Below are positions 40,001 through 63,710 of a stretch of 64,000 bases of DNA, piece by piece; positions within the stretch are counted from its first letter, which is position 1, and each line of letters opens with the position of its first letter. This DNA is from Macrostomum lignano (taxonomy: Eukaryota). The translations under genes and the position numbers were made by a program. The stretch is from contig NIVC01001962.1 in NCBI GenBank assembly GCA_002269645.1, positions 1 to 64,000 of the forward strand, given 5' to 3'. A model generated the notes under the pieces. The model was not told the DNA's origin, did no database searches, and saw only the letters and a list, made by a program, of their open reading frames with translations.

Positions 40001-43000
40001 TGGGGTATGGGGTTCTGGGATGGTATTGGGGTATGGGATTCGGGGATGGTATTGGGGTATGGGATTCGGGGATGGTATTGGGGTATGGGGTTCGGGGATG
40101 GTATTGGGGTATGGGATTCGGGAATGGTATTGGGGTATGGGATTCGGGATGGTATTGGGGTATGGAATTCGGGATGGTATTGGGGTATGGGGTTCGGGGA
40201 TGGTATTGGGGTATGGGGTTCGGGGATGGTATTGGGGGTATGGGATTCGGGGATGGTATTGGGGTATGGGATTCGGGGATGGTATTGGGGGTATGGGATT
40301 CGGGGATGGTATTGGGGTATGGGACTTTGGGATGGTATTGGGGTATGGGGTTCGTGGATGGTATTGGGGTATGGGAATTTAGGATGGTATTGGGGTATGG
40401 GATTCGGGGATGGTATTGGGGTATGGGGTTCGGGGATGGTATTGGGGTATGGGGTTCGGGGATGGTATTGGGGTATGGGATTCGGGGATGGTATTGGGGT
40501 ATGGGATTCGGGGATGGTATTGGGGTATGGGGTTCGGGATGGTATTGGGGTATGGGGTTCGGGGATGGTATTGGGGTATGGGGTTCGGGGATGGTATTGG
40601 GGTATGGGATTCGGGGATGGTATTGGGGTATGGGACTTTAGGATGGTATTGGGTTATGGGACTTTAGGATGGTACTGGGGTATGGGGTTCGGGGATGGTA
40701 TTGGGGTATGGGGTTCGGGGATGGTATTGGGGGTATGGGATTCGGGAATGGTATTGGGGTATGGGATTCGGGGATGGTATTGGGGTATGGAATTCGGGGA
40801 TGGTATTGGGGTATGGGGTTCGGGGATGGTATTGGGGTATGGGGTTCGGGGATGGTATTGGGGGTATGGGATTCGGGGATGGTATTGGGGTATGGGATTC
40901 GGGGATGGTATTGGGGTATGGGATTCAAGGATGGTATTGGGGTATGGGGTTCGGGGATGGTATTGGGGGTATGGGATTCGGGGATGGTATTGGGGTATGG
41001 GATTCGGGGATGGTATTGGGGTATGGGATTCGGGGATGGTATTGGGGTATGGGACTTTGGGATGGTATTGGGGTATGGGGTTCGTGGATGGTATTGGGGT
41101 ATGGGAATTTAGGATGGTATTGGGGTATGGGATTCGGGGATGGTATTGGGGTATGGGGTTCGGGGATGGTATTGGGGTATGGGGTTCGGGGATGGTATTG
41201 GGGTATGGGGCTCGGGGATGGTATTGGGGTATGGGATTCGGGGATGGTATTGGGGTATGGGGTTCGGGGATGGTATTGGGGTATGGGGTTCGGGGATGGT
41301 ATTGGGGTATGGGGCTCGGGGATGGTATTGGGGTATGGGATTCGGGGATGGTATTGGGGTATGGGACTTTAGGATGGTATTGGGTTATGGGACTTTAGGA
41401 TGGTACTGTGGTATGGGGTTCGGGGATGGTATTGGGGTATGGGACTTTAGGATGGTATTGGGTTATGGGACTTTAGGATGGTATTGGGGTATGGGGCATA
41501 GCATATGAATCTGAGCAAGGCGCGCTCCAGCCCACCTTATTGAAGCTGTGAAAGCGGATCTTGTCCTTGCCCTCAGTCTGCACCAGCTCCATAGGGTGAA
41601 ACTCCAGAAAGTCCAGTCCGCTGTACGGATCTACCGAGGCCGCCGCAGGCGCTGTGCCAGACGCAGCGGAACCCGTCGCTACGGAGGAGACCTCGCGCGG
41701 CTTGGTGGTGACGCAGGCTCGCACAGAGTCGTCAGGCCGGTCGCGCAGGCTGGCCACAATCGTCTCGCCCAGCTCGAAGGCGGCCAAGGCGGCAGCGGCC
41801 GCGGCTTCCACTGAGTCGGGCGTCAGCTGCGACTCCAGCGACTTCAGCGACTGGCCGGACGCGACGCGGAGGCAGTGATCGAGCAGGGGACCTCCGTAGG
41901 GGAACAGGCCGGTGAGGGACCTGGCCAGCTGGCCTTTCTGAGTGGCGGCTGCAGAGCAAACCGGGGCGATTGCGGCCAGGCTCCAGTCGCAGGCCTGCCT
42001 GGCCTTGTCCAGCTGGTAGGTCTCGCTGGTGACGATCTTGGTCTGGTCTGCCGCGTCTGTCCTCGGCCTGAGCAGGTGCACGATGGTGAACTGGTGATCA
42101 GTGAGCAGGGCGTTGCCCTTATCGTACAGCTCCACAATGAGGTGGAAAGTCCATTCGCCCGTGCCGAACTGCAGCCGAACAATGCGATCGATGCCAACCA
42201 GCTGGATCTGCTCCAGCCGCTTGTTCTTGATGTGCTTGCGCAGCTTCATTGAGAAACCGCTGGGCGTGATGTTCTTCGGCCAGTCAAAGTCCGTGATGTG
42301 CAGCCGGATGCCCGACTCGAATAGCAGGGTCACCTGGGGACAGGCGAGTCACGGTTGGCATGCGTGAGGGAAGGCGATTTATAAAGATTAGAGGGCGATT
42401 CCTAAAGATAAAAAGGCGATTCCTAAAGATTAGAGGGCGGCTCCTAAAGATAAGAGGGCGATTCCAAAAGATAATAGGGCGATTCCAAAAGATAAGAGGG
42501 CGATTCCAAAGAGTCGAAGGCGATTCCTAAAGATTAGAGGACGATTCCTAAAGATAAGAGGGCGATTTCTAAAGATAAGTGGGCGATTTCTAAAGATCAC
42601 AGGGCGATTCTTAAAGATTAGAGGGCGATTAATAAAGATTCCGAGGCGATTCCTAAAGATTAAAGGCGATTCCCAAAGATTAAAGGGCGGTTCCTAAATA
42701 TTAAGAGGGCGACTCCTAAAGATTAGAGGGCGATTCCTAAAGATTAGAGGGCGATTTCTAAAGATTCAAAGGCGATTCCTAAAGATTAAAGGGCGATTCC
42801 TAGAGATCAAAGGGCGATTCCTAAATATCAAAGGGCGATTCCTAAAGATAAGAAGGCGATCCTTAAAGATTAGAGGGCGATTCCTAAAGATTAGAGGGCG
42901 ATTTCTAAAGATTCAAAGGCGATTACTAAAGATTAAAGGGCGATTCCTAGAGATCAAAGGGCGATTCCTAAATATCAAAGGGCGATTCCTAAAGATAAGA

Positions 43001-43341: not shown

Positions 43342-43444
43342 TTCAGTTGCTTACTACTAAGTGAGTAGAAACAGGCGGGTTTGAAACTGTTGGCAGTGCG
43401 ATGTGGGGTTGAATAGCAAACTCAGTCCATGGCTGAAATTGTTG

Positions 43445-44105
43445 AGGGCGATTCTCGATTAAGTTGAGGGCGATTCTCAATTCCCAGTTAGAGGGGAGAG
43501 GGCGATTCCCAGTTAGAGGGAGTTGATTCGTAGTTAGGGGAGGGCGATTCCCAGTTAGGGGGAGAGGGCGATTCCCAGTTAGGGAGGGGGGCTGATTCCC
43601 AGTTAGATGGGAAGGGCGATTCCCAGTTAGAGAGAGAGATATTCCCAGTTAGGGAGGGGGAGCTGATTCCTAGTTAGGGGGAGAGGGCGATTCCCAGTTA
43701 GGGGGAGAGGGCGATTCCCAGTTAGATGGGAACGGGAAGGGCGATTCCCAGTTAGGGGGGGGGCGATTTCCAGTGAGGGAGAGGGCAATTTCCAGTGAGG
43801 GAGAGGGCGATTCCCAGTTAGGGGGGGGGGCGATTTCCAGTGAGGGAGAGGGCGATTCCCAGTTAGGGAGAGGGCAATTTCCAGTGAGGGAGAGGGCGAT
43901 TCCCAGTTAGGGAGAGGGCGATTCCCAGTTACGGAGAAGGCGATTCCCAGTTAGGGAGAGGGCGATTCCCAGTTAGGGGGCGATTCCCAGCTTGTGGGGG
44001 CGGGGCGATTTCCAGTGAGGGAGAGGGCGATTTCCAGTCAGGGGGGGGCGATTCCCAATTAGGGGGCGGGGCGATTTCCAGTGAGGGAGAGGGCGATTTC
44101 CAGTG
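43445..44105. repeat. ~22-bp minisatellite in the DDX21-NEMF spacer
   Basis: Unit gggcgattcccagttaggg(g)aga and variants. Confidence 0.9.
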
Positions 44106-44379
44106 AAAGAGAAAGGCCTCAAAGAAAAAGAAGAAAGTCTCAAGCAGAAAAAATGTTTCACAAAAGAAAAACTGGTCGGCTTGTTACTGCGAAGACGCAA
44201 AGCAGATTTCTCAGTCATCATTAGCAGCCTATGTTCTCATTCAGAGCAACCCTGGATTGCAGCAAAGTGCAACAGAAAAAAACGCGATGCAGCTCAACAA
44301 TTATTTAAAACTGAGGGCACACTTAGATATTCATTTTTTAAAAAATGCATCGATAAAACTTTTCTACTCGAGCCGCTAC

Positions 44380-45266: not shown

Positions 45267-48200
45267 GGCAGACAGGCAGACAGACAGACAGACAGGCAGA
45301 CAGACAGGCAGACAGACAGGCAGACAGATAGACTCACAGTCTCAGCCTCAGTGTGCAGCACGAAGGCGGTGAAGCCCTCCCTGGCAGACAGGAGGCTGCG
45401 GCCAACAATTTCAGTTTTGCCGCTGAGCAGCACCAGTGCGGCAGCCACGGCTCGCTCGGCGCCCATGGCGGCGATGAGCTCGGAGGCCTCCTCGGCCAGC
45501 AGCTGGATGGTGGGATCCTGCACCGCCTGCAGCTGCTCCAGCGAGTGCCGGCCGGCCGCTTTGACCAAATCCGCGGTTGTGGGCGCGCCGATGCGCTTGA
45601 ATCTGGGCGGGATGTCGGGGAAAGGGGAAGGCGTGATTAGCTGCTCCTGATTCAATTATATCCCAATCCCAGAAATCCCCATCTGCAGAATTCGCACCTG
45701 ATGCCAGCCTGCCGTTCGACCCTCTTCAGTTCGGTCTCCTCCTTGACGGTGTAGAAGGTGACGGCGGCGCCGGACCTGCCGGCTCGGCCGGTCCTGCCAG
45801 CCCGGTGGATGTAGGACTCGGTGTCCTTGGGCGGGTGGCACAGGATCACCAGGTCAACATGCGGGATGTCCAGGCCGCGGGCGGCCACATCGGTGGTCAC
45901 CAGCACTCGGTATTTGCCGTCGCGAAATTTTTGCAGCACCAATTCGCGCTTGTCCTGCGGAATGTCGCCGTGCAGGACGTGACAGTCGCCGGACATCGCC
46001 GCGTGCGAGGCCAGCTCGTCGGCGTCGCGCTTGCGCTCGCAGAACACGATGCAGCGGGCCTGCGGGCCGCCGCACCTCACTCGGATCACGTCGGCGATGG
46101 CCGCGCTGCGCGAGGCGAACGGCGACAGGATGGCGAGGTGCTCGACGGTCTGGGCGGCCCGGCCCTGGCCGTCACCGGTGACCAGGTCCAGGCGGACCAG
46201 GTTGTCCGGGTCCAGGTACTTGGCAGAGGTCTCTTCGACCTGCATGGGGATTTATGCATTTGCTAGTTTGATTTATGCACTTGGGATCTCGGATCGCAGC
46301 TTTGGGAACTAGGCAAATGAGATCTGGGATATGGGATATCAGATTTGGGATCTAGGAACTGGGATCTCGGATCGCAGATTTGGGAACTAGGCAAGTGAGA
46401 TCTGGGATATGGGATATCAGATTTGGGATCTAGGAACTGGGATCTCGGATCGCAGCTTTGGGATGCAGGCAAATGAGATCTGGGATATCAGATTTGGGAT
46501 CTAGGAACTGGGATCTCGGATCGCAGATTTGGGAACTAGGCAAATGAGATCTGGGATATGGGATATCAGATTTGGGATCCAGGCAAATGAGATCTGGGAT
46601 CTGGGATATCAGATTTGGGATCCAGGCAAATGAGATCTGGGATCTGGGATATCAGATTTGGGATCCAGGCAAATGAGATCTGGGATCTGGGATATCAGAT
46701 TTGGGATCTAGGAACTGGGATCTGGGGTACCAGATTTGGGATCTAGGCAAACGAGATCTGGGATAGTGGAATTGGGATCTGGGATATCATACTTGGGATT
46801 TAAGGAATCATATATATTGGATTAGAGATCTCCAAGGTTAGGATCTTAAGAATTTGAGATCGAGAATCCGAAATTGTACTAATAAGAATCAGAGAAAGAT
46901 TCGAACTCAGGACTAACTCACCCAGGAGGGCAGCGTAGCCGAGAACAGCAGAGTCTGCGGCCTCTTCTTCTCCTCTTGGCCAGCATCTTCCTCGCCGCCG
47001 CTGTACAGCCGCTTGATCAGCTGATCAACCGAGTCGCGGAATCCCATATCCAGCATCCTATCGACTTCATCCAGCACCACCCGGCGGATTCTGTCCATCC
47101 GCAGGCAGCCCTGCTCGACCAGGTCCTGTACGCGGCCGGGCGTGCCAACCACAATGTCCGACCCGGCGGCCAGGGCCGAGCGGTGCTTCTCGTACGGCAC
47201 GCCACCGTAGACCGGCAGCACTACCAGGCCGCTGTCCGGCGGGCAGGTGGCCGTCAGATCGTCAGAGATCTGCTTGGCCAGCTCGCGGGTCGGCGCCAGG
47301 ATGAGAACGCGCGGGGCTCGATTCGGGGACCGCCGCTTGGCTGGCGTCTGAATGGCAAAGTAAGGAGGTTAACAATGTGAGATTGAGCTGACAAGAAGTT
47401 CTTGACGATGTGAGATTGTGCTGACAAGAAGTTCTTGACGATGTGAGATTGTGCTGACAAGAAGTTCTTAACGATGTGAGATTGAGCTGACAAGAAGTTC
47501 TTAACGATGTGAGATTGAGCTGACAAGAAGTTCTTGACGATGTGAGATTGAGCTGACAAGAAGTTCTTGACGATGTGAGATTGTGCTGACAAGAAGTTCT
47601 TGACGATGTGAGATTGTGCTGACAAGAAGTTCTTGACGATGTGAGATTGAGCTGACAAGAAGTTCTTAACGATGTGAGATTGAGCTGACAAGAAGTTCTT
47701 AACGATGTGAGATTGAGCTGACAAGAAGTTCTTGACGATGTGAGATTGAGCTGACAAGAAGTTCTTGACGATGTGAGATTGAGCTGACAAGAAGTTCTTG
47801 ACGATGTGAGATTGTGCTGACAAGAAGTTCTTGACAATGTGAGATTAAACTGACAAAACATTCTCAACGATGTGAGATTGAGCTGACAAGAAGTTCTCAA
47901 CGATGTGAGATTGTGCTGACAAGAAGTTCTTGACAATGTGAGATTGAGGTGACAAAACATTCTCAACGATGTGAGATTGAGCTGACAAGAAGTTCTCAAC
48001 GATGTGAGATTGAAAGTTCTGACAAGACATTCTTAACGATGTGAGATTGAGCTGACAAGAAGTTCTCAACGATGTGAGATTGAAAGTTCTGACAAGACAT
48101 TCTTAACGATGTGAGATTGAGCTGACAAGAAGTTCTTGAGCTGTCAAGCGTTGCTGTCGATAAAGAAGCCAGAGAGCTCAATAAAAATTTTCTCACCCCG

Positions 48201-48577
48201 GCTTTGCCAGCCCGCTTGTCCTGCTGCTTCAGCAGCTGAAGGACAATGGGCAGCCCGAAGGCCAGCGTCTTTCCTGTGCCGGTGCGCGACTGCACAATGA
48301 GATCGTGACCGGACATCACGTGATCAAACGACTGCTGCTGCACTGGAAACAGGCCGGTAATGCCGCGCTCTCGCAACTGATGCAGCACAGAGTCTGGAAG
48401 GTCGAACTGCTCCAGGCTGCGGTCGCCAGGCTGCTGCTCAGCCTCAGGCTTCTCAGTGTCCTCGGCAGCTACCTCTGCACTGTGCCCATTTTCCTGGCTT
48501 TCATCCGACTGCTTCTTTGTTTTCAACTGCTTGTTCTTCTTCTGTTGCTGCTTTGACTGCTTTTTAGGCGCCTTCAT
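44380..48577 (-). CDS. DDX21: Nucleolar RNA helicase 2 (DDX21/DDX50 family), 694 aa; complement(join(44380..44850,45338..45602,45698..46239,46922..47347,48197..48577))
   Basis: Motifs: Q motif LFPVQQ, SRTGTGKTLAF, PTRELAKQ, GTPGR, LDEVDRMLDMGF (the DEVD variant typical of DDX21/50), SAT, LHGDIPQ, TDVAARGLDIP, YIHRAGRTGRAG. A GUCT-like region and an RGG/FRGG tail follow. Intron phases 0,0,2,0 are consistent. DDX21 and DDX50 cannot be distinguished because that duplication is vertebrate-specific. Confidence 0.95.
44891..45330. repeat. (GACA/GGCA)n microsatellite, DDX21 intron 4
   Basis: Read directly from the sequence. Confidence 0.97.
46280..46800. repeat. 43-bp/78-bp GGGAT-rich minisatellite, DDX21 intron 2
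   Basis: Unit aggcaaatgagatctgggatctgggatatcagatttgggatcc (46581 to 46624). Confidence 0.9.
47375..48140. repeat. 33-bp minisatellite, DDX21 intron 1
   Basis: Unit gatgtgagattgagctgacaagaagttcttaac, ~23 copies. Confidence 0.95.
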
Positions 48578-51500
48578 GTTGCCCTGCTGGAAACAAATTC
48601 GTTTGGAAATGCTGTTTAAATAAATATAATATTATTACAAATGAAAGCTGTGAGCACTCCACAGATTCTAAAAGGACTCGATGGGCTACTCAGGCATATA
48701 TGCTTAGTAAAACAGCTTTCTACTTACAGTTCAGTAGCAAAGAAGAATACATAAGCTATTTTATGAAAATAAAGGTGGCTAAAATGACTTTGATAAGTTT
48801 GCAGATGTAAACATCTTGCTAATTGGTTCAGCAGTAATGTACATTAGCCCATCCACTAAAATGTACATGGCAGCTTTAGGCTGGAACTCTCAGAAAGGCA
48901 ATAAAAATTGGGGTGCGATGGGGGGTAGTGTGAAAAGGGGCAGTTGGAGGTGCATTTAAGTTAGGGGAGGTAAGAGCCATAAATGAGCCATGGCTTAAAA
49001 AATAACATTAAAATGCTTCTGTTTAACCCACTACTGAACTGAAAGTAGCTTGCACGCAAATTCCACTGACTCCTGAACACATACAAGATGTCAATACTGT
49101 ATGCAGGCATGCGCTCATACACAAGCTCACACAGGGTGTACATCAGTCCTGACCTAATTGTCAGACTGTACACTCTCTGTGCCCTGGGGGTTGCATTGGC
49201 CCTTTATGAGATCACTAGCAATCTTATTATCTCCCACTGGGGAGGCAGCAAAGAAAGTCATAAGACAGGATGAAATTATTGTATTTGGCATGTCCAATAG
49301 AACTATGCAATTTTTTATAATGCACAAAACAATCTTCACTTGTTGCACCTTATGATTTTCAACTTAACAAATTAAAAACTACAAATTAGAAAATAATTAA
49401 TATTTTTATCAACTGAATATAAATGTAGTGAAGTTACATTTGTTTAATCCTGTTCTTGAGAAACAGTTCTGTTTTTTTCTTTAAAATCAACTTACAAGTA
49501 TAATAGTCCAGATGGTTTTCTTTGAAAAAAAATCAAATTCCTGCCAAATTTTTACTGTATTTTTTTTTAGTTTACAGGTGCAAATATTATCTTAATAACT
49601 AACAATTTGAATCAATTTGACAATGCATATAAAACCCCAATCCAATTTCCAAAGAACAAATAGAATGCAATAAAAACTGCAAATACTAAAAATGAGTTCT
49701 ATGAAAAAAACATAAATTTAAATTTTCACAAAAGAAATGTGTGGATTTTTTAATTTTAACATTCAAGTAATTATTTTTTTTAGATTTATATTTTATTCAT
49801 ATTTGAAAATTTCCATCAAATCAAAAGATTAAGCCTAGTATATATAATTAAAAAAACCAAACTAATGGTTTTCTTTCTATGTCAATCATTTTGAATTGTC
49901 TTGTAGGCATAATATTCATATTCAAACACATAGGCCTTGATCCATAAACTATAAAGAATCCTCATGAAATGCTGACTATGAAAAAAGCAGAGATTTTCAT
50001 TATTCATTAAACATAATTGGATTTAGATTGGAAAACATAAATTCAAAAAGATCATAACTCTGGAATTGTAAATAAACAAAATTAAATAAAGCAATATTCA
50101 ACCATTGCAGAAAATAATTAAAAAGTTAAGGTTTGATTTCCCTTAAGATTTGCAAGTAATTTTACTATTTAAAAATGAAATGGCTATTACCAAAGAATAT
50201 TTTTCTTGTCACTAAAATGACTATAATCCATGGCTAAGGGATCCTATGGCATATATAGTAGAACTAGGTGCTTCTAGCAGCTACAGATACCAAGGATAGC
50301 CTATGGTAGATAGGTGTTCTTATAGCTATAGCTATGGAAATATAATAATTGCAGTCAAATTTTGTAGATTCTTGTAGTTGTAATTATAAATTGAAAAAAA
50401 TATTAAAAGGTAAAATAAAACTAAGATACTTAGTATAAATTATATCATAGATTCAAAAACTTAAAAATTATAACTAATATAGTACAATAAAACTAGCAAA
50501 TTTTTTTATCAATGTTAAAAAGTTTAATAGTGGTACTTTTTAGTAGCTAGATTAAAATGTAATTGTACAAAAGGCAGTTGAGTGTTAGTTTGAGTTTATC
50601 TTTATTTGTAATAGTTTAAGTTCTAAGTTATCCTCTTGATTCAAACTATTTTTTTTCTTAGACTTTTTGTTAAAACTATAACTATGGGAAAATGGTAATA
50701 TTGGGGTCCCAATGGCTATGAAATATGGAGAATTGAAAGAAGCCATAGTTGTGCTTATGGCTACAGTATATGGACCCCCCTATGGCAGAATATTAGGCCT
50801 AGTTATAATAGATAATAGATATCCCCTTTTCTACACCAGATAGACACCTATCCATATCCCAATGAATTCGAATTAAAATCAATGTTGATTACAAAAAACC
50901 AACACATTTCAACCTATAAGGTCTATTATCTGTATATTTGATTGATAAAATAGGCCTATGAAAACTCTATATATTATAAATTACTAGGCTTAGGCCAAAC
51001 GCCAAATAGGGCCTAGTCTAGGATAAAACCTATCAAATAAATAGGAAATAATATATGAAAGCATTATAGGCCTATAGACAAGGGATAAAAAATAAGGAAA
51101 ATGTGAAAAGAACTAAAATTTATAGCCTAACAAAAATAGGCTTAGTCAATATTAAAACACCTTAAGGTGACTTGCACTTTATATAATATCTAGATAGGTA
51201 AAAAAATAAAGCTAGGCCTTGGGGCTTTGAACTTTTTTGTGCAATAAGTGTAGAATGCCAGGTCTACTTACAATTAGAATGGTTAAATCAATTTTAAAAA
51301 GCTCAATAAGACTATTATTTTGCTTTAGTCAATCTAAAAACTAAAAGTGGCATATTGACATTGTTCAAATGCTTTTGTATAAAAAATTAAAATTGTTTAC
51401 TTTTATTCTTATATTGATTTAATAGATTGACTATAGAGATGGCTATTATGGCTTAAAAGTAGAAATGTAAAAAAAGTCACTTTTTCATGTTGGATAGTCA

Positions 51501-51749
51501 TGGCCAATGGCCTTCTGTATATCAGAACTATAAGCTGATATTATGAAGCACCTCTTGTCATTACAATGACTATACTTATAGTCTTTAATTTTTATAAAAA
51601 TAGTGTCTATAACAAAAGCAACTTGTCACCAAAATGAATAGAATATTTGTCACAAGAATGTCTATCACTGAAACAATTGATACCCATAGCCATAGCTATG
51701 GTGGAACACTACTAATGACTGACTAGCATGGTTTATAAATGGTTTAGAC

Positions 51750-53000
51750 CTGCGTACAAGCAAGCAAGGCAGCAAGCAAACAAGCAAGATTTTTTGGCAA
51801 TGTCCTACTTTCCCGCGTTAAATTACATTTTTGACTCCCACCTTAGCAAGTTTCTCTGGCGCTGACTCTAGGGACCTACCCAAAAAGAGCTTTGGCAACT
51901 TTCTGTACTGGCTGACACATTACTACACTACGCCGTGTACTACTCCTTTTAATACCTAAGACTCATTTTAAATCTTGAATAAACTTGCTTTTGTTTGTTT
52001 GTTTCACTTATTTTAGGTCAAAAGAATAATTTAACGCGGGAAACTAGGACATTGCCGATTTTCTTTTTTAGTATGGATTTAATAATAATAAATCAATATT
52101 AATAATAATAATATTTTAATATTGATTTGTATAAAAAGCATCATCACTAGGCCAAAGGTGCTATCCATGAATCAACATTTAGTTCAACACAAATCCAAAG
52201 CCTCAGCCTGGACCTGATGCCTGTCATCATCAGACATTATTCATGAATAGGGGCCTACCAAATGCTGGGATGAATTGGAAAGCACAATGTATTTCTCGCC
52301 AATACACTTTGACTCATATGATAAATGTATTTCAGCCCGGTATCTAATAATAACTGACTGTAAAATAAAAATATTTGCTTCTATTTAATTTATCATTGCC
52401 ATTGGCACTTGTTATTTGGCCAGTCACTGTATACTGTAAAGCAGAAACATTGCGCAACAGCTTTGTCGTTGAATTTCGAGACAACACAACTTCATTCTAA
52501 GAAAGACGCACCAAAAACCTGTTTTGAAAGTTTTCGCACGGTAAAAGCAAACAGCCAAGATTATTATCGTATTAAATGACTAAGTTATTAGTTTAATAAG
52601 ATAAAATAATATAAGCTTGTTTTTTAAACCTTTCTAATTAAAATACTGTTACTAATGTTCTCTGGGGCTACACCACGATTTTGCAGCAATTTAAATTAAA
52701 ATATTTATTTTTTCCTTTTAAATCAGTCAGATTTCTTCTGAAATTTCTGAACTGGACTAAACTACCTTTGGCTTTAGGCTTTACGAGACGTTTCTCTAAC
52801 TTTCTAGTTTCTAGTATACGAGATAGTTTTTAATTGTTTATTTAATATTCGTAAAGAATGATTAACCACCCATAAACTCATTTTCGTCATACCTGAAATT
52901 ATCCTAAAACAACCTCGTTAGAGGAATTTGTGTTGAACACTTAATTTACCGAGAGTTGATACGAAGACACCGTTTAAAGTAGTGATTTAAAATTAGACGG
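51750..53000. promoter_or_regulatory. Candidate bidirectional promoter (DDX21/NEMF and STT3B), a CpG-retaining segment inside CpG-depleted DNA
   Basis: It lies between head-to-head genes. I count roughly 29 CpG in 1.25 kb here versus ~2 in each 2-2.6 kb flank. Confidence 0.5.
51796..52056. repeat. 30-bp inverted repeat (29/30) with ~200-bp spacer; each arm holds TTTCCCGCG
   Basis: 51796-51825 ggcaatgtcctactttcccgcgttaaatta versus 52027-52056 taatttaacgcgggaaactaggacattgcc. Confidence 0.85.
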
Positions 53001-53065
53001 AATCCTTACAATCACTTTTAGATTAAATAAATTTGAAGGCATTTGTAAAGCTGAACAAACTTGTA

Positions 53066-56000
53066 ATGGGTGAAGGTCTTCAAATTGGAGCTACTGGATG
53101 GACCAGTTTGATTACTGTTTTTGTGCTTGGTCTTGCCTGGATTGCTGGTTTTAGCTCAAGATTGTTTAGTGTGATTAGATATGAAAGCATCATTCATGAG
53201 TTTGATCCCTGGTTCAATTATCGCTCTACTGCTCATATGGTTGAGAATGGATTCTATGAATTCCTTAACTGGTTTGATGAACGAGCCTGGTATCCATTGG
53301 GTCGCATTGTTGGTGGCACTGTATATCCAGGACTAATGGTAACATCTGGTAAGTGTTCTATTGTTATTTTAATTTTGAATTATATATTATCTTTTCATCC
53401 AAATTAGAAACTAATACTCAAAAAATATATTTAGAAACTCTTTGACTTTCTTCTTTATTATTTTGTCTTTAAGGCAATATCCATGTAGGCATTATGATTT
53501 TGAACAATCTAGGTATATATAAATTAAAAGTCAAATAAGATCATAATCTTATGTTTAGAATTTGATATTTTTAATTAATTTAAATCTTGACTTGATAATT
53601 GATTGAATCTCAATTTTAAAAGTGCCAAAAACTGGCAAGAATCCAAGATACCAAGTTTACTTTTTTTCTTTAACTATATAAAACTTTATACAAATTAAAC
53701 AATTCTTTTTAGTTTTTAGCTTTTATTCTTTTATGGAAATATCAAAATCCTTAGTCTAGCAAAAAAGTTTTAAAATTGATAATATAAATTGATAAATTAG
53801 AAAATAATTATGAAAAATCTTTAGGCCTAATAAATTTTTATATATATTGGCATATGCCTATACCAAAAAATATTTTTTCTAGGCTACATACAGAGTCTTC
53901 CAAAGTATTAGGTTTATGCCATAGTCTAGAATCTAGATCATGCTAGGTGTATAGCTGAACAAAAATTGAACAAATACAAATATATGCCAATGTATATCAT
54001 ATTTTTTTGATTGTATACCAACTAAAAAATAAAAGTACTAGCCAATGTAAATTCAATTGCATAAAAAATTAAAACTAGTTTAAGAATTCTAATTTTTAGG
54101 TTTATAATTTCTTTTGCTAAAAAATAAAAAAATCATGAAGATGTGTTAAAATGCACTAATACAAGTTTACAAAAACTAGAAATCCTAAATTTAATGCTAA
54201 ATAAACTTCATAATATTTTTTCACTTAACCAAAGGAACTCTTCCATATGAATACATAAAGCATATGCCAGGTATGCATATAAACTTATGCTAGTATTTTT
54301 TCTAATACAATTGCACTAGATATTGTGCTAGTGCAGTTATACTAGTTTTATCCATAGACATTTTCATATCTTTCCGACACATACAAAGTTAACATTTGCA
54401 AAAAATGATAATAGAAAAAGGACACTAGACATTTGAGGTTATGAAATGTTAATATTGACTTTCTTTCATATTTTCTAGTATAACTCTTAACCTAAACTCA
54501 ATAAAAAAGAAATTCAAAAAACAAGTTCTTTTGTTGAAAAATTATCCTTAGTTTGACTCATTGAACAAAAAATGGTCAAAGTACAAAGGAGCTAGAGAAA
54601 TAATTCCAGGAACTTTTGGGATAACCCCTTGTATATATATACAAGATACATAATCCTTGTATATATATACAATTATCTCTAGAATATTGATAATTTCTCG
54701 ATCCAAAATAGTTTTATAGTAACTGTAAAGTATTAAGCTTTTTAGATTTAGAGTTGCAAAACTAAATAGTTTAGCCTAAACCAAAAGTGTTTCTTTTAGA
54801 GAGATTTTCATTCAAGTCAAGAAAGCAAATGTTTAATTCCTATGGGACTTTAAGGTTGTTAGCCCTTAGGGGCCTATATTGTGGCTAAATATCAAATTGT
54901 ATTAGAAAAATGCTTAAAGTATATTAAACACAGCTAGTCTTTTTGTTTCTATAAACAATTGAGCTTTAAGTGCACCTTGGAACTAACCATTTCTGGCAAG
55001 ACTGCTATTTGCAAAAACACCTTTGATATTTATAAAAATGTACCTTAAAATGAAAACATATTTTAAGTGTAAATGTAGCACTTTAGAATTTTAGCAATTT
55101 TTGCATTTAAAATACCAATCCCAATTCTTTAATTAGGCTAATTAATATTTCTGCATGCTGCATGTTGATAGCTAAAAAGAATAGATTTCTTTTACTTGAA
55201 GTACTTGAATTACTAAGTATTTCAATTCATATTTTATTTTAAATTTGAAAATGTAAAGTTTTGACTTTAGAATTAATTGTTTATTTTATTAAAAACTTAC
55301 TAATCTAAATATGGTTTTGAGCTATAAAAATAAAAAAGGCAATTTATCATGGTAGTTTATTATAAAAGTATTTATTTATAAAACATAGCCCATCAATAAC
55401 ACATTGTAGGCTTCATCCACTATGTGCTGAGCCTGCTAAACATTCCTGTGCACATCCGTGAAGTGTGCGTCTTTCTGGCGCCAATCTTCAGTGGCATGAC
55501 TGCCATCGCTACCTATCTGCTAACCAAAGAACTCTGGAATGGAGGCGCTGGACTTTTTGCAGCCTGCTTTATTGCGATTGGTAAGCGATTGTGATATTTT
55601 ATTGAAATCATATTTCATAATATTACATGAGCTCATTGCCAGTAATATTTAGCCCAATGACACTGCAAACATTAAAACAGGGGTTGGCAAACGCCTCTTC
55701 CTCCTCTTCTCTCCTCCTCTCCTCTCCTCCTCTCTCCTCTCCTCTCCTCCTCTCCTTTCCTCTTCCTTCTCTGCTCTCCTCCTCTCCTCTTCTCTCCTCC
55801 TCTCCTCTCCTCCTCTCTCCTCTCCCTCCTCTCCTCTCCTCTTCCTCCTCTCCTCTCCTCCTCTCCTTTCCTCTTCCTTCTCTGCTCTCCTCATCTCCTC
55901 TTCTCTCATCTCCCCCTCTCCTCTCCCTCCTCTCCTCTCCCTCCTCTCCTCTCCCTCCTCTCCTCTCCCTCCTCTCCTATCCCTCCTCTCCTCTCCCTCC

Positions 56001-59000
56001 TCTTCTCCCTCCTCTTCTCTCCCTCCTCTTCTCTCCCTCCTCTTCTCTCCCTCCTCTCACCGCCCCTGAGATTAAGTTTGCCTTACCCCGTACGACAAGA
56101 GTCGAACCCGGTACTGCACCGTTGCATCGCCCTCCCCTCTCCTCCCCCTCGCCGATCCGCAGTCCCCGGCTACATCAGCCGCTCCGTGGCCGGCAGCTAC
56201 GACAACGAGGGCATCGCCATCTTCGCCCTGATGTTCACCTACTACCTGTGGATCAAGGCGGTGAAGACCGGCACCATATTCTGGGCGGCCATGGCTGCTG
56301 TGTCCTATTTCTACATGGTCGGAGCCTGGGGTGGCTACGTGTTCATCATCAATCTCGTACCGCTGCACGTGTTCGTTCTGCTGCTCATGCAGCGCTACTC
56401 AGCCAGGATCTACGTTGCCTACACTACATTCTACATTCTGGGCTTGCTGCTCAGCATGCAGATCCCATTTGTGGGATTTCAGCCGATTAGAACTAGCGAG
56501 CACATGGCTAGCGCAGGCGTGTTTGTACTGCTGCAGGCCTACGCTGCCCTGCGCTACCTGCAGCACAGCCTCACCAAGAGCCAGTTCCGGCATTTCTTCT
56601 TTCTGTCCGCCGTGAGCTGCTTCGCCTAAACTTCCATGACAACCACATCTTTGGCTTAATTCAGTTTGACGTCATCTTTAGCCTCATTACAAGAATCGCC
56701 CCTTAGCCTCAGTTATAAGAATCGCCCCTCAGCCTCATTACAAGAATTGCCCCTTAGCCTCGGTTACAAGAATTGCCCCTTAGCCTCAGTTACAAGAATC
56801 GCCTCTTAGCCACAGTTACAAGAATCGCCCTTAGCCTCGATTACAAGAATCGACCCTTAGCCACAGGTACAAGAACCGCCCCTCAGCCTCAGCTTCAAGA
56901 ATCGCCCTTTAGCCTCAGCTACAAGAGTCGCCCCTCAGCCTCAGCTACAAGAATCGCCCCTCAGCCTCATTACAAGAATCGCCCCTCAGCCTCAGTTACA
57001 AGAATTGCCCCTTAGCCTCGGTTACAAGAACTGCCCCTCAGCCTCAGCTTCAAGAATCGCCCCTCAGCCTCAGTTACAAGAATCGCCCCTCAGCCTCAGT
57101 TACAAGAATTGCCCCTCAGCCTCATTACAAGAATCGCCCCTCAGCCTCAGTTACAAGAATTGCCCCTTAGCCTCGGTTACAAGAACCGCCCCTCAGCCTC
57201 AGCTTCAAGAATCGCCCCTTAGCCTCAGCTTCAAGAATCGCCCCTCAGCTTCAAGAATCGCCCCTTAGCCTCAGTTACAAGAATCGCCCCTTAGCCTCAG
57301 CTTCAAGAATCGCCCCTTAACCTCAGTTACAAGAATCGCCCCTCAGCCTCATTACAAGAATCGCCCCTCAGCCTCATTACCAGAATCGCCCCTCAGCCTC
57401 ATTACAAGAATCGCCCCTTAGCCTCAGCTTCAAGAATCGCCCCTCAGCTTCAAGAATCGCCCCTTAGCCTCGGCTACAAGAATCACCCCAACGCCCAAAC
57501 ATACGCCAGGTGGCCGCGGCGGGCCTGGTGTTCGCCTCAGTCGTGGGCCTCACCTACCTGGGCTACGTGGCGCCCTGGAGCGGCCGGTTCTACTCCCTGT
57601 GGGACACCGGCTACGCCAAGATCCACATCCCCATCATCGCCAGTGTCTCCGAGCACCAGCCAACTCCCTGGGTGAGCTTCTTCTTCGACTTGCACATCCT
57701 TGTCTGCGTCTACCCTGCCGGCGCCTGGTTCTGCATCCGGGATCTCACCGATGAGCGCGTCTTCATCGTCCTGTACGCCGTGTTCGCCTCCTACTTCGCC
57801 GGCGTCATGGTCCGCCTGATGCTCACGCTGACTCCCTGCGTCTGCGTGCTGGCCGCCATCGCCTTCTCGCGCCTGTTTGACATCTACTTGAAAGACGAGG
57901 TCGAGCCCGGCGCTGCTGCTGGCGCCGCTGGCGATTCTTCTTCGGCTGTTGGCGCCGGCTCTGGCGCCTCTGGTAATAAACGGCGCCAACAGGCCGCCGG
58001 CGCCTCTTCTAGCGCCGGTTCGGCTTCGTCTGAGCCGCGCAATCTGTACGACAAGCCCAAGATTAAGCAGAGGGGAGACAGCGGCTCCTCGGCTGTCAGC
58101 GCCACGGGACAGCAGGTGCGTTCATTTAGCCGTGTCATGCCGTGTCTGTATAGAGATGCTCACCAAGCTCCGGTTTGGGGAAGTTTCTTAATAGTTGAAA
58201 CAGCTCGATTCTCGAGGATCGCTTGCTAAACACACCATAAAACGGCTTTGTTATCCACCCCGATAAGCGCTTCCTAAACACTTGGATAAACAGTCCCTAA
58301 ATACCCCGGTAACCGCTCCCTAAAGACTCCGATAACCGCTCCCTAAACACCCCGATAACCGCTCTCTAAAGACTCCGATAACCGCTCCCTAAACACCCCG
58401 ATAACCGCTCCCTAAACACCCCGATAACCGCTCCCTAAACACCCTGATAACCGCTCCCTAAACACTTGGATAAACAGTCCCTAAATACCCCGGTAACCGC
58501 TCCCTAAAGACTCCGATAACCGCTCCCTAAACACCCCGATAACCGCTCTCTAAAGACTCCGATAACCGCTCCCTAAACACCCCGATAACCGCTCCCTAAA
58601 CACCCCGATAACCGCTCCCTAAACACCCCGATAACCGCTCCCTAAACACCCCGATAACCGCTCCCTAAACACCCTGATAACCGCTCCCTAAACATACATG
58701 CGCAACTTTGGGAATCACCCGGCCGTTTCTATTGGCAACACACACATGTAAGTCGCTATTGGCTGAGAGCAGTCACGTGACTACTATTCCGTCCAATAGC
58801 GACTTACATGTGTGTGTTGCCAATAGAAACGGCCGGGTGAATCCCTAGGTTGCGCCCAAGCATGTCCCTAAACACCCCGATAACCGCTCCCTAAACACCC
58901 CGATAACCGCTCCCTAAACACTCCGATAATAACGCTTCCTTAATACCCTGTAAGTCGTTTTATAAACACACTAACAATTTTCTCACTTTAAACGCCCCGA

Positions 59001-60297
59001 TAGCAATACGCCAGGTGTGGCCAGGTGTGGCTGTATCTTGAACGCCCAACTCTGCTTAAGTTTTAAGGCTGAGAGACACAGATTAAGCATATAAGACGTA
59101 GGTCAAAGCCAGTGCTGTAAACTGCCTACCCCAGCCCGCCTTATTGATGCAGTGGCCCGTGTCGCTAAACTATTTCAGGGCGATCGACGCGACGACGAAG
59201 TGCTCGGCTTGAACGTGAAGTCGGTGGTGCTGCTGGTGTTTGTCATTGTGATTCTGCTGTTCTGCATGCACTGCACCTGGGTCACCTCCAATGCCTATTC
59301 GTCCCCGAGCATTGTGCTGGCCAGCTACAATCAGGACGGATCGCGGGTGATTCTTGACGACTTCAGGGAAGCTTATTATTGGCTGCGGAGGAACACGCAC
59401 GACAGGGCCCGGGTTATGAGCTGGTGAGGCGTTTGACAATTACCTGTCTTGGACCAAGCATTTCCCATGAAAGAGCCGCCCTCCCAGCCCCACTGATTCC
59501 CCATATAAAAGCGCCGCCCTCCCAGCCCCACTGATTCCCCATGTAAAAGAGCCGCCCTCCCAGCCCCACTGATTCCCCATGTAAAAGAGCCGCCCTCCCA
59601 TCCCCACTGATTCCCCATGTAAAAGCCCCCCCCCCAACCGCCCAGGTGGGACTACGGCTACCAGATCGCCGGCATGGCCAACCGCACCACCCTGGTTGAC
59701 AACAACACGTGGAACAACAGCCACATCGCTCTGGTCGGCAAGGCCATGGCCAGCAACGAGACGGAGGCCTACAAGATCATGCGCATGCTGGACGTTGACT
59801 ACGTGCTCATCATATTCGGCGGCGTCATCGGCTACTCCGGCGACGACATCAACAAGTTCCTGTGGATGGTCCGCATCGCCGAGGGCGAGCACCCGCGCGA
59901 CATCAAAGAGAGCGACTATTTCACTCCGCAGGGCGAGTACAAGATTGACGGCTCGGCCTCGCAGACCATGCTAAACTCGCTGATGTACAAGATGAGCTAT
60001 TATCGGTTCGGCGAGATGCAGACGGATTTTCGAACTCCGCCAGGATTCGATCGAACTCGGAATGCGGAGATCGGCCGCAAGCACTTCACATTGAAGCACC
60101 TGGAGGAGGCGTTCACCTCCGAGCACTGGATGGTCCGGATCTACAAGGTGAAGCAGCCGCCAAATCGCAATAAGATCGAGCAGCCAAAGTCCCGGGTTCG
60201 AGTCTTCAATACTAGGAAGACCCTTAGCAACAAGGTGGGCACCCTGCGCCAGAAGCCGTCAGTGGTGCGCGGCAAGCGCCCGGCCAGGAATCGTTGA
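53066..60297 (+). CDS. STT3B: Oligosaccharyltransferase catalytic subunit STT3B, 801 aa; join(53066..53348,55410..55580,56163..56611,57510..58115,59179..59423,59646..60297)
   Basis: Motifs: [38 protein letters not shown] (split by intron 5), [30 protein letters not shown]. The B-type loop with NLYDK and the AEGEH...[20 protein letters not shown] segment favour STT3B over STT3A. Intron phases 1,1,0,0,2 are consistent and the total is 2406 nt. Confidence 0.96.
55695..56060. repeat. CT-rich polypyrimidine low-complexity tract, STT3B intron 2
   Basis: Read directly from the sequence. Confidence 0.9.
56685..57483. repeat. 26-bp minisatellite filling STT3B intron 3
   Basis: Unit acaagaatcgcccctcagcctcagtt. 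Confidence 0.94.
58255..58930. repeat. 23-bp minisatellite, STT3B intron 4, interrupted by a MITE
   Basis: Unit ccccgataaccgctccctaaaca. Confidence 0.93.
58695..58864. mobile_element. Foldback MITE (~63-bp arms) with 9-10 bp TSD, Mutator-like by TSD length
   Basis: Arms are at 58700-58762 and 58793-58855. (t)ccctaaaca is duplicated at 58685-94 and 58865-74 relative to the host repeat unit. Confidence 0.8.
59465..59635. repeat. 38-bp minisatellite, ~4.5 copies, STT3B intron 5
   Basis: Unit aaagagccgccctcccagccccactgattccccatgta. Confidence 0.9.
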
Positions 60298-61549
60298 TAA
60301 ACGTGCAAAACTCGAGGCTTATGAATGCGAAATTCGAATAATTAATATCGAGTCACCAACTCTTAGAATTGTTTTTGTTGATGCGCCCGAAGCAGTCTGT
60401 TTCTTTTTTCTTTTACATTGTTTCTGGCTTCAAAACCCCGATGTTAATCGTCTTTGTTCCTCTTTTCATTTTCCTCTGTGCGTCTCTGCTTTCATTATAG
60501 TCTGTCCTGTTTAATGTGCTCCTCTCGTTTGTCATGCATCTTAAATGGGCAATAAAAATCATATAATATAAAATAGTTACAATTCTCGTCTGCTCTACTG
60601 ACCAACTCTGGTTAGTTAGTAGTATCAATAAACTGCGTTTTTTTTCTACACTTCCTCGTGTTTCTGAGTTCCTTGTGTTTTCTGTAGTAACCAATGCACT
60701 CAATGCCCATCCGAAACTGAAGGTGGTTGGTCCTGTTTTTAATTAATAATAATTGTCATTAGTTATCGTGTTAACTACTTGTAGTATCAATAGTAACTTT
60801 TTTCAATTTTAACAATCCTAACTGAGGCATAAGAATTAGGAGACTTGTTTAAAAGGCCCGGTATCCATTTTTGTGTTCCAAGTACTGAATTTGAACAAAA
60901 AAAACAATTCCGGAATTTTCATTCGCCTACATTTATTTAAACAAATTTTCTACAGTAAATTAATTAGGCCCCGTGTTTAGTTTAGATTTTAGTATATGGA
61001 TTTGTCTCTGAGTGCCAACCTGCTAATGCTGCATCATATTGTCTAATTCAAGTTTTATTATTTTACTACTGTGTAAGTTTGTCCCAGCTCAGTTCTGCCC
61101 AGTTCATCTCGATGGACCCTTTACTGACTAGCCTACTACTAACTAGTAGTACTGATGCCATGCTGCTCCTGAAGGTCCGTCATTTTGCTAGCATCTGCTC
61201 ATTATTATCCTTGGGTGTCCTTCTAGAGCAGTGTGGTCAGGCCTGGGCAGCACACCGCTGTCTGCCCGTTTTTCCTTCTCTCTGCGGCTGTTCGTGTGTC
61301 CTGTCTGTCCCGCTTAACCCTAAATTATATTTAGCCCGCCTGTTGTCTGCTATCTGTCTCAATGCCTTTGACTATGCGGCTAAGATAAAAATTACTCAAT
61401 TTATCAATTATTATTGTTATTATTATCATCTGCAAAGCTTAGTTCTGTTTTCTAATGGTCTGGATAAAATGCCATTTAAGCTTTTGGATTTTGCTTGTCT
61501 CTCTTATTTTTCTGCATGTATATAGTGCTAATGCTTAGTGGGTTTTAGG

Positions 61550-62220
61550 GATCGGGGAGTTTAGGGATTGGGGAGTTTAGGAATTGGGGAGTTTAGGGAT
61601 TTGGGAGTTTAGGGATTGGGGAGTTTGGGAATTGGGGAGTTTAGGGATTTGGGAGTTTAGGGATCGGGGAGTTTAGGGATTGGGGAGTTTAGGAATTGGG
61701 GAGTTTAGGAATTGGGGAGTTTAGGGATTTGGGAGTTTAGGGATTGGGGAGTTTGGGGATTTGGGAGTTTAGGGATTTGGGAGTTTAGGGATCGGGGAGT
61801 TTAGGGATTGGGGAGTTTAGGAATTGGGGAGTTTAGGAATTGGGGAGTTTAGGGATTTGGGAGTTTGGGAATTGGGGAGTTTAGGGATTGTGGAGTTTGG
61901 GAATTGGGGAGTTTAGGGATTTGGGAGTTTAGGGATCGGGGAGTTTAGGGATTGGGGAGTTTAGGGATTGGGGAGTTTAGGGATTGGGGAGTTTAGGAAT
62001 TGGGGAGTTTAGGAATTGGGGAGTTTAGGGATTTGGGAGTTTAGGGATTGGGGAGTTTAGGGATTGGGGAGTTTAGGGATTTGGGAGTTTAGGGATCGGG
62101 GAGTTTAGGGATTGGGGAGTTTAGGGATTGGGGAGTTTAGGAATTGGGGAGTTTAGGGATCGGAGAGTTCAGAGATTAGAGAGTTCAGAGATTAGAGAGT
62201 TTAGAGATTAGAGGGTTTAG
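61550..62220. repeat. 16-bp G-rich minisatellite containing TTAGGG (ggggagtttagggatt)
   Basis: Tandem unit, ~40 copies. Confidence 0.94.
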
Positions 62221-62859
62221 AGTGTAGAGCCCCTTTTTGGGAAGGCCAGCAAATTTCTCGAAGAAACGCTCAGTGGTTTTCCAGACTTCTGGGTCTTATA
62301 AAAATTTGCTTTTCAAGGTAAAGACGATCCACGCTATTTTCACAATCATAGTAAGGGCTTAATTAACTGTTTCCAGGTGTAATATATATTTGCATACAAG
62401 TCTAGATTTGTCTATAAGCAATGCAAAGCAATTTGCGAGGTAAGAGAGAATTAAAGACAAAAAATGTGCAAGTTCACGGCAGTGTAGTATGGTTACGTAA
62501 CAGCATATAATTTGTGTCATTGCCTGGTTCCCTGAAAACTGCCAATCTCAGGTCAGGTGCTTTGCAAAGTTCACATGGTTAAACCATAGAAGAAGTGCAT
62601 ATACGAGTCTATGGAGTTGATGTCAGTTAAAAATGTGTACATATGCTAATTACTCGTCTAATTGTCTGCATGTACAATTATAGAGAACATGCCAGTACGA
62701 ATGCGACATGCACAGCCGCCTATGATACGGGATATGTGCTCCGGACAGTTAAAAATTAATGTGCAGTACATGAAGAGGAACTACGTACACATACTGTAAC
62801 TTATGCACTTGACATGTGTATGGGACCTCACTCTGTCTGCAGACAGGATGCGTCACTCA

Positions 62860-63420
62860 TAAGACAGCTAGGATGCGTCACTCTAAAGGCGGGATGCTGA
62901 ACTTTTGAGACAATAATGCGTCACTCTAGAGACCAGATTGTCACTCAGAGACCGGATGAGTCACTCTAAACACCAAATGCGTCACTCTAGAGACATGTAT
63001 CACTCTAGAGATATGTCAATCTAGAGACCATGTGTGTCACTCAGAGACCGGATGAATTACTCTAGAGACCATGTGTGTCACTCAGAGACCGGATGAATTA
63101 CTCTAGAGACCATGTGTGTCACTCAGAGACCGGATGAATTACTCTAGAGACCATGTGTGTCACTCAGAGACCGGATGAGTCACTCTAGAGACATGCGTCC
63201 CTCAGAGACCGGATGAGTCACTCTAAACACATGTGTCACTCTAGAGACATGTGTCACTCTAGAGACCATGTGTGTCACTCAGAGACCGGATGAGTCACTC
63301 TAGAGACGTGTCACTCTAGAGACATGTCACTCTAGAGACCATGTGTGTCACTCAGAGACCGGATGAGTCACTCTAGAGACATGCGTCCCTCAGAGACCGG
63401 ATGAGTCACTCTAGAGACGC
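62860..63420. repeat. gtcactctagagac-based compound minisatellite, with a related 21-bp array at ~63545-63620
   Basis: Alternating gtcactctagagaccatgtgt and gtcactcagagaccggatga units. Confidence 0.88.
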
Positions 63421-63710
63421 TCGTATTGGGGGGGGTAGCGGGGAGTGCATGTACATAGTATACGCATGTCATTCTATAGACAGGATTCTTGTAAAAGTAC
63501 GTTTATATAAACGAAAACAGCACTGTTACAGATTGGGTAAGGACTCTAGCGACCGCACGAGTCACTCTAGCGACCGCAAGAGTCACTCTAGCGACCGCAC
63601 AAGTCACTCATCTAGAGACTGGATTTATCACTCTATCGACAATGATAAACTTCAGCGTCGATGCTGGCTAGAAAGTACATTCATTGGTAGAAAAGCGCAC
63701 CAGCCGCTCA

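Follow-up and report, generated by a model that had tools for sequence, protein, structure and literature searches.

A nearly CpG-free, AT-rich valley around the 5' ends of divergent helicase and STT3B genes in the flatworm Macrostomum lignano

The 64,000-nucleotide stretch of the Macrostomum lignano genome analyzed here (positions 1 to 64,000 of the forward strand of contig NIVC01001962.1 in the assembly GCA_002269645.1; hereafter the window, in which all coordinates are given) carries two divergently oriented genes, one for a DDX21-like DEAD-box helicase and one for STT3B, whose 5' ends are embedded in an AT-rich valley of about 6.8 kb. The valley consists of the 4.5 kb between the two start codons, exon 1 of STT3B, and STT3B intron 1. 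A first-pass annotation, made from the sequence by eye, had described this region as depleted of CpG dinucleotides on both sides of a center that retains them. This depleted-retained-depleted pattern proves to be real and CpG-specific, with the retaining center located just upstream of the STT3B start codon. All results described below come from this single locus.

The helicase and STT3B genes and the DNA between them

The helicase gene is encoded on the reverse strand and is recognized by its downstream exons, which match the Pfam domains DEAD (1e-42) and Helicase_C (8e-31), and by a C-terminal tail of FRGG repeats that is of the DDX21/Gu type. Its ATG is at 48577, and its first coding exon (48190-48577), an open reading frame (ORF), forms the left edge of the valley. 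STT3B is encoded on the forward strand, with the ATG at 53066 and a Pfam STT3 match of 3.6e-102 for exons 1 to 3. Exon 1 (53066-53348) is followed by intron 1 (53349-55409), which begins with GT at 53349 and ends with AG at 55408-55409, and by exon 2 (55410-55580), the right edge of the valley; exon 3 begins at 56163, and the final exon extends to 60294. A peptide search shows exon 1 to be an ordinary metazoan STT3B exon. Exons 1, 2, and 3 join in phase, and the STT3B of the mollusc Dreissena aligns with them without gaps over both junctions. Both valley edges coincide with splice sites, namely, the acceptor upstream of the helicase ATG on the left and the acceptor of STT3B exon 2 on the right. 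Further away, the reverse strand carries NEMF, identified by the open frame 41476-42348, in which a stretch of 260 amino acids is 99% identical to the M. lignano NEMF protein (UniProt A0A1I8IR07).

From left to right, the valley begins with a transition zone (48578-49112, assigned to the reverse strand) that has a GC content of 0.32-0.45 and only 5 CpG and includes a splice acceptor and a possible GTAAGT donor. It is followed by the left CpG-free flank (49113-51752), which represents either DNA upstream of the helicase gene or its outron and combines a GC content of 0.28 with 2 CpG, where 52 are expected. Next come an insertion that resembles a miniature inverted-repeat transposable element (MITE) of the hAT type (51796-52056) and, on the STT3B strand, a CpG-retaining island (52290-53065) that adjoins the STT3B ATG and is likely to contain the STT3B promoter and 5' untranslated region (5'UTR); it might also serve as a shared bidirectional promoter. 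Exon 1 of STT3B, with AT-rich codons and 3 CpG, separates this island from the right CpG-free flank, which is STT3B intron 1 (GC 0.24).

CpG content and base composition of the valley

Composition was recomputed over the whole window, and a 200-bp profile was drawn across the region. The counts made by eye in the first-pass annotation (2, about 29, and 2 CpG) are exactly those obtained by recomputation. The left flank (49120-51750) has a GC content of 0.281 and 2 CpG, an observed/expected ratio (o/e) of 0.04; the center (51750-53000) has a GC content of 0.335 and 29 CpG (o/e 0.83); and the right flank (53350-55400) has a GC content of 0.244 and, again, 2 CpG (o/e 0.07). The respective values are GC 0.485, 2129 CpG, and o/e 0.74 for positions 1-48599 and GC 0.503, 412 CpG, and o/e 0.76 for positions 55401-64000. 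The four residual CpG of the flanks are found at 50869, 51000, 54375, and 54699. In 2000 mononucleotide shuffles, the expected numbers of CpG were 51.9 +/- 6.0 for the left flank and 30.4 +/- 4.9 for the right one, with minima of 28 and 14, and the Poisson probabilities calculated against the window's own o/e of 0.77 are 4e-15 and 2e-8, respectively. The reverse dinucleotide, GpC, is not depleted, with symmetrized o/e values of 1.38 in the left flank and 1.72 in the right flank. The CpG deficit of the flanks is specific to this dinucleotide and far beyond chance.

When the CpG-free runs of the window are ranked by length, the valley accounts for four of the top five, including one of 1757 bp in the left flank. 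The remaining one, which at 1851 bp is the longest of all, comes from a 55-bp minisatellite (6023-7793; 32 copies with 98% identity, GC ~0.51) whose repeat unit happens to lack CpG; it is trivial, yet any scan for CpG valleys would flag it. The flanks had been said to lack minisatellites, and Tandem Repeats Finder agrees, reporting for 48139-55694 only a 44-bp AT-rich array at 52078; no other long non-coding stretch in the window lacks a minisatellite. On the other hand, the flanks had also been called rich in TG and CA, and this impression was not borne out: the TpG/CpA o/e is 1.13 and 1.07 in the two flanks and 1.07 in the center, all within the background range of 0.89-1.18. The noncoding edges are sharp; at 55400, for example, a span of 200 bp takes the GC content from 0.18 to 0.48. 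About 100 nt of AT-rich DNA extends into STT3B intron 2, ahead of a CT-rich microsatellite.

As controls of matched composition, we used the unique non-coding DNA of the window, obtained by masking tandem repeats and open frames with GC-rich third codon positions; this left 26 segments outside the valley, each 150 bp or longer. These segments have a GC content of 0.32-0.51 (0.32-0.36 in 7 of them) and a CpG o/e of 0.34-1.01, or 0.77 when pooled. A second set was taken from published M. lignano sequences (Wudarski 2017, Supplementary Data 1), namely, the initial 399 nt of five promoter fragments and one 3'UTR, with a GC content of 0.33-0.52 and a CpG o/e of 0.45-1.16. The first-pass annotation had staked its reading on the flanks having a lower CpG o/e than DNA of similar composition, and so they do, at 0.04-0.07 compared to 0.34-1.16 in the controls. 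CpG is therefore depleted relative to both GpC and matched controls, as would be expected of a footprint of 5-methylcytosine (5mC) deamination. A general rule that M. lignano promoters are CpG-free is ruled out, within the limits of a small sample, by the five promoter fragments.

The center of the valley is a composite. Of its 29 CpG, 7 are in the MITE, 1 is at the right junction of the MITE (52056), 1 is at 51753, and 20 are located in 52297-52998. The MITE is 261 bp long, with 40-nt terminal inverted repeats that are 90% complementary and lie 181 nt apart, and it is flanked by the 8-mers GATTTTTT (51788-51795) and GATTTTCT (52057-52064), identical in 7 of 8 positions, which constitute an 8-bp target-site duplication. 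Judging by this anatomy, the element appears to be hAT-like. It sits between the left CpG-free flank and the island next to STT3B and has kept its CpG. The window contains no further copy of it, and the MITE end had no match in the metagenome contigs of JGI. The earlier view of the central CpG as retained by a promoter thus probably holds for the 20 CpG found at the level expected from composition but not for the 8 that come from the MITE and its junction. In 52290-53000, directly upstream of the STT3B start codon, the GC content is ~0.31 and there are 20 CpG compared to 17.1 expected; the CpG o/e of 52060-53066 is 0.83, and the range for the equally AT-rich center is 0.8-1.2. By the definition of Gardiner-Garden and Frommer, 52290-53000 has sufficient length (~710 bp) and an o/e above the required 0.6 but falls short of the required G+C of 0.5, with values of 0.29-0.36 across 52200-52999. 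The 0.7 kb before the STT3B ATG is the real island of the center, which acts like a CpG island without being one by definition.

The compositional shift extends into coding DNA. From exon 1 to exon 5 of STT3B, the GC content of fourfold degenerate sites (GC4) is 0.21, 0.59, 0.76, 0.83, and 0.89, and the GC content of third codon positions (GC3) is 0.31 in exon 1, 0.55 in exon 2, and about 0.8 in exons 3 to 5. Moving away from the valley on the other side, helicase exons 1, 2, and 3 have GC4 values of 0.66, 0.84, and 0.90 and GC3 values of 0.71, 0.80, and 0.86, so that GC4 climbs stepwise with distance on both sides and the effect fades over 1-2 kb in each direction. CpG follows a similar course, with o/e values of 0.67, 0.95, and 1.06 in helicase exons 1, 2, and 3. 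Only this first helicase exon and STT3B exon 1 (0.26) have a lowered exonic CpG o/e; STT3B exon 2, intermediate in composition, has 6 CpG. The range of 0.85-1.06 found in helicase exons 2 and 3, the NEMF exon, and the exons of an ENaC-like gene bears out the earlier statement that gene bodies further out are CpG-rich. An AT-rich composition is not a general property of first exons, a rule excluded by NEMF exon 1 (43341-43201), which has a GC3 of 0.77 and 9 CpG in 141 nt. Because this exon is GC-rich and lies outside any valley, the effect is regional rather than tied to first exons.

All 3 CpG of STT3B exon 1 occupy codon positions 1 and 2 of Arg CGN codons, whereas none of the 48 opportunities for a silent CpG (17 NCG and 31 NNC|G) is used, compared to 119 of 322 from exon 3 to the last exon. 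As loss of the Arg CGN CpG would change the protein and the silent ones are gone, the CpG loss looks mutational, with constrained sites spared, and fits a process that acts on all unconstrained CpG of the domain, in coding and non-coding DNA alike. It does not account for the base composition, however. At the usual composition of the window, complete removal of CpG would lower the GC content by only a few points and cannot reach 0.27. Since CpG decay can neither take the GC content from ~0.45 to 0.27 nor produce an exon-1 GC4 of 0.21, a second, regional process is needed. Translational selection alone would have given exon 1 the same GC-rich codons as the other exons; their absence makes a position-dependent force acting on DNA more likely, for which recombination-linked biased gene conversion is the obvious and most likely candidate.

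Few recognizable sequences were found in the valley. The left CpG-free flank resembles no other part of the window, and no repeats are common to the valley and the rest of the window that could be used to polarize CpG-to-TpG changes. In the flanks, searches for transposon or gene relics gave no Pfam match for ORFs of at least 58 amino acids at E values up to 1, no Rfam match at E values up to 1, and no tRNA. Several short motifs are over-represented. All four copies of the palindrome TAGGCCTA in the window are located in the valley (50794-51215 and 53822); the two CpG-free flanks together contain 13 copies of GGCCTA, where 1.1 are expected, and the valley as a whole has 15 of the 30 copies in the window; and CCATAG/CTATGG has 12 occurrences compared to 1.5 expected. 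These motifs may represent a decayed repeat or candidate binding sites.

Promoters and other features of the window

The splice acceptor of the helicase gene, ttccag|CAGGGCAACATG on the reverse strand, has its AG at 48588-48587, 10 nt upstream of the ATG. In M. lignano, trans-splice acceptors have the motif [T/C]TNCAG, and the 35-nt spliced leader ends in ATG (PMC8629364). The TTCCAG of the helicase matches this motif, and an ATG contributed by the end of the leader would share the reading frame of the helicase start codon. Judging from these sequence features, the acceptor is compatible with predicted trans-splicing and with one central promoter. With just 5 CpG, the 0.5 kb beside the helicase does not resemble an island; with no island at the helicase ATG, the logic of CpG islands favors a single central promoter and a 3.4-kb outron. 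No consistent switch in AT or GC strand skew that would mark a divergent transcription start was found in the valley. The divergent promoter proposed in the first-pass annotation is best described as putative but reasonable.

The helicase stop codon (~44.4 kb) is followed on the same strand by NEMF exon 1, and a 22-bp minisatellite (43441-44152) takes up most of the gap. Under a criterion of <1 kb after adjustment for repeats (PMC8629364), these two genes look like a two-gene operon. A search for additional copies from M. lignano or sister species found neither the STT3B exon-1 ORF nor the helicase ORF on record, and a search with the STT3B exon-1 peptide gave no match above 92% identity for partial alignments or above 84% for near-full ones. 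The only close relative found is a 908-bp contig, L001, of the Logan assembly of SRR31628392, which carries a NEMF exon whose protein is 87% identical to that of the window; this contig probably comes from another Macrostomum-like species.

Elsewhere in the window, 30363-30741 and 35105-35492, between the ENaC-like gene and NEMF, are a diverged duplicate with 78-82% identity and open frames that share 'CPQFAELLSTG', a repeated gene fragment or element. On the forward strand, 35871-35940 gives a weak Rfam tRNA match (34.5 bits, with a gathering score of 29) that is missed by ARAGORN and may be a tRNA-derived repeat. The end of STT3B intron 2 (56060-56160), next to the CT-rich microsatellite (55694-56058), is rich in GC and CpG and contains 'gagtcgaacccggtactgcaccg', which resembles a reversed tRNA T-arm and hints at a fragment of a tRNA-derived short interspersed nuclear element (SINE).

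Possible origins of the valley and comparison with known systems

According to passages in reviews that cite Wasik 2015 (PMC11292947, PMC9246332, and PMC10658182), M. lignano retains DNMT1 and DNMT3 and has low adult 5mC, in which it differs from planarians and parasitic flatworms. The reported retention of both enzymes would make a methylation-based mechanism available, and hence plausible, in this organism. In the reading that we favor, the valley would be a compositional domain of 6.8 kb that has evolved in situ, where two divergent housekeeping genes have their 5' ends. CpG methylation in the germline would have covered this domain but not the ~0.7 kb immediately before the STT3B start codon, which would have stayed hypomethylated, and 5mC deamination would have removed nearly all CpG that were free of amino acid constraint; the hAT-like MITE, located in the unmethylated center or next to it, would be younger and still have its CpG. 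In addition, the GC-favoring force that elsewhere holds silent sites near 80% GC would be locally absent, so that AT-biased mutation could bring neutral sites, including the silent sites of STT3B exon 1, to ~21-28% GC. A methylated, closed, recombination-poor chromatin domain would join the two processes. We consider the chances about even that long-term local germline methylation around a hypomethylated STT3B promoter, possibly a shared one, acted together with a local lack of the GC-favoring force. Within this scheme, methylation, presumed from its footprint in the sequence, is most likely the best explanation of the CpG loss, albeit an incomplete one, and we infer both the recombination deficit and the shared central promoter. 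The methylation signature claimed in the first-pass annotation accordingly survives in part: the CpG-specific depleted-retained-depleted pattern speaks for it, whereas any TpG/CpA excess does not stand out from the background, and methylation leaves the GC content of 0.27 and the exon-1 silent sites unexplained.

Several observations weigh against this scheme. The reported level of adult 5mC is low, and PMC9246332 calls its pattern in the genome unknown; no later M. lignano methylome was found in the literature searched. The gain in TpG/CpA expected from deamination, ~0.1 in o/e, lies within the scatter of the background. CpG persist in the downstream exons of both housekeeping genes, a pattern opposite to that of typical gene-body methylation in invertebrates, and strand skew of the transcription-coupled kind was not found in the valley. 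A consensus GTAAGT donor is present at 48727-48722, 141 nt upstream of the helicase acceptor, which makes possible a short (141-nt) 5'UTR intron and a helicase start near 49 kb, in which case most of the left flank would be untranscribed intergenic DNA. Finally, unique introns outside the valley have a GC content of ~0.41 and not 0.8, an exon/intron contrast that biased gene conversion alone would not produce.

Among the rival explanations, the one that survives best attributes the valley to its age rather than to targeting. CpG decay from weak genome-wide methylation and AT-biased mutation would act everywhere but be visible only in promoter-proximal DNA, the only DNA old enough, from which selection excludes minisatellites and transposons, while other non-coding DNA would be young, repeat-derived, and still of the composition of its source. 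This fits the absence of minisatellites from the valley alone among long non-coding stretches, the CpG kept by the MITE, which is the single recognizable insertion there, and the run of AT-rich DNA into STT3B intron 2 that stops at the microsatellite; moreover, repeats make up half of the M. lignano genome (PMC5730564). However, age explains neither the AT-rich silent sites of STT3B exon 1, given that other exons, for which GC4 is put at 0.66-0.90, are equally old, nor the gradient of GC4 with distance, and all 26 unique segments outside the valley would need to be young. We regard this explanation as unlikely.

Slightly less probable, in our view, is a cold spot of recombination and biased gene conversion acting alone, with no part played by DNA methylation. 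Such a cold spot would account for the symmetric GC4 gradient and for the lack of minisatellites, which are often linked to recombination, and the GC content of 0.24-0.28 in the flanks and the exon-1 GC4 of 0.21 are what AT-biased mutation alone would be expected to produce. However, it should lower GC and not reduce CpG twenty-fold while GpC reaches 1.4-1.7. It leaves unexplained why CpG was spared in the equally AT-rich 52290-53000, and AT-rich segments elsewhere keep a CpG o/e of 0.7-1.0. A cold spot, listed in the first-pass annotation as an alternative to methylation, is better seen as a second component that is needed alongside it, given the exon-1 GC4 of 0.21 compared to 0.76-0.89 from exon 3 onwards.

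The valley could also be a block of different origin, such as an assembly join, a homoeologous or introgressed segment, or foreign DNA. The sharp noncoding edges, such as that at 55400, and the codon usage of STT3B exon 1, distinct from that of the rest of the gene, would agree with this, and the DV1 assembly is redundant and M. lignano a hidden polyploid (PMC5730564). Nevertheless, the edges fall at splice sites and not at arbitrary points, exon 1 is a normal metazoan exon in phase and gapless with exons 2 and 3 in the alignment with Dreissena, the intermediate compositions of STT3B exon 2 and helicase exon 1 form a gradient and not a step, and the window contains no N. The assembly join or introgressed segment envisaged in the first-pass annotation is thus unlikely, given the colinearity of exons 1, 2, and 3 and the graded GC4 on both sides, and we consider a different origin of any kind very improbable. 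Least credible of all is a functional AT-rich element (a nucleosome-excluding promoter surround, a matrix attachment region, or a replication origin) with CpG selected against, which would suit the position around a promoter and the over-represented short GC-containing motifs TAGGCCTA and CCATAG but calls for implausibly strong selection on ~80 individual CpG over 4.7 kb and faces the same trend in the silent sites of exon 1; to our knowledge, no element of these kinds has been made CpG-free by selection.

Macrostomum lignano, the flatworm used as a transgenic model, has not lost DNMT1 and DNMT3, and its methylation pattern has barely been described. A footprint as extreme as this one marks where germline methylation probably acted over the long term and also where it did not, namely, in the downstream exons that are its usual target in invertebrates. 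A single odd locus would be a curiosity. If such valleys recur at other promoters, they would allow methylated domains and true promoters to be predicted inexpensively across the whole genome, in a species whose transcription starts are hidden by trans-splicing; they would also tie methylation to local suppression of the GC-favoring force behind the very GC-rich codons of this genome and explain locally aberrant codon usage. We would venture, although this is doubtful, that the sparse 5mC of M. lignano takes the form of kilobase-sized collars that surround unmethylated housekeeping promoters and are made up of outron, first-intron, and upstream DNA, rather than being placed in gene bodies or transposons, and that these collars are recombination-cold and decay to an AT-rich, CpG-free state, first exons included. 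If true, this architecture would be a methylation layout undescribed in any animal and legible genome-wide from sequence alone.

Several known systems leave comparable footprints. In fungi, repeat-induced point mutation (RIP) likewise produces sharp AT-rich blocks in GC-balanced DNA. However, a RIP-like process was rejected here: the (CpA+TpG)/(ApC+GpT) index is 1.34 and 1.26 in the flanks and not <1.03 (TpA/ApT is 0.98 and 1.04, with >0.89 as the criterion), and the valley is single-copy, contains a functional exon, and belongs to an animal.

Vertebrate CpG islands stand out from a methylated, CpG-depleted genome (Bird 1986; Gardiner-Garden and Frommer 1987). Like them, the valley combines CpG-depleted flanks, presumably the result of 5mC deamination, with a promoter-proximal stretch that has approximately the expected number of CpG and belongs to a housekeeping gene. 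In contrast to vertebrates, the depletion covers only ~6.8 kb of an otherwise CpG-rich window and leaves the downstream gene bodies undepleted, the island is AT-rich (GC 0.31), and the depletion is deeper, with an o/e of 0.04-0.07 compared to about 0.2 in vertebrates.

In invertebrates such as Ciona, Apis, and Nematostella, whose genomes are mostly unmethylated, methylation is mosaic and found in gene bodies, with a 5' bias in insects (Suzuki et al. 2007; Zemach et al. 2010). The valley resembles this pattern in being a local low-CpG domain at housekeeping genes with the promoter spared, and the mark in insects is likewise near the 5' end. However, a low CpG o/e across the exons of a transcription unit, the hallmark of gene-body methylation, is not seen: exons past exon 2 keep their CpG, and the depleted DNA consists of intron 1, exon 1, and 3.4 kb upstream of the neighboring gene. 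The valley also differs in its 20-point drop in GC content, which reaches silent sites.

Such a drop is more reminiscent of isochores and recombination-cold regions, GC domains shaped by biased gene conversion. As in those domains, neutral and silent GC are shifted regionally, the edges are graded, and the DNA is AT-rich where the GC-favoring force is missing. Unlike isochores, the valley spans kilobases instead of hundreds of kilobases and is centered on a promoter, and its CpG-specific loss is not predicted by gene conversion. We class the valley as a probable footprint of methylation decay to which a compositional cold domain on a micro-scale is added.

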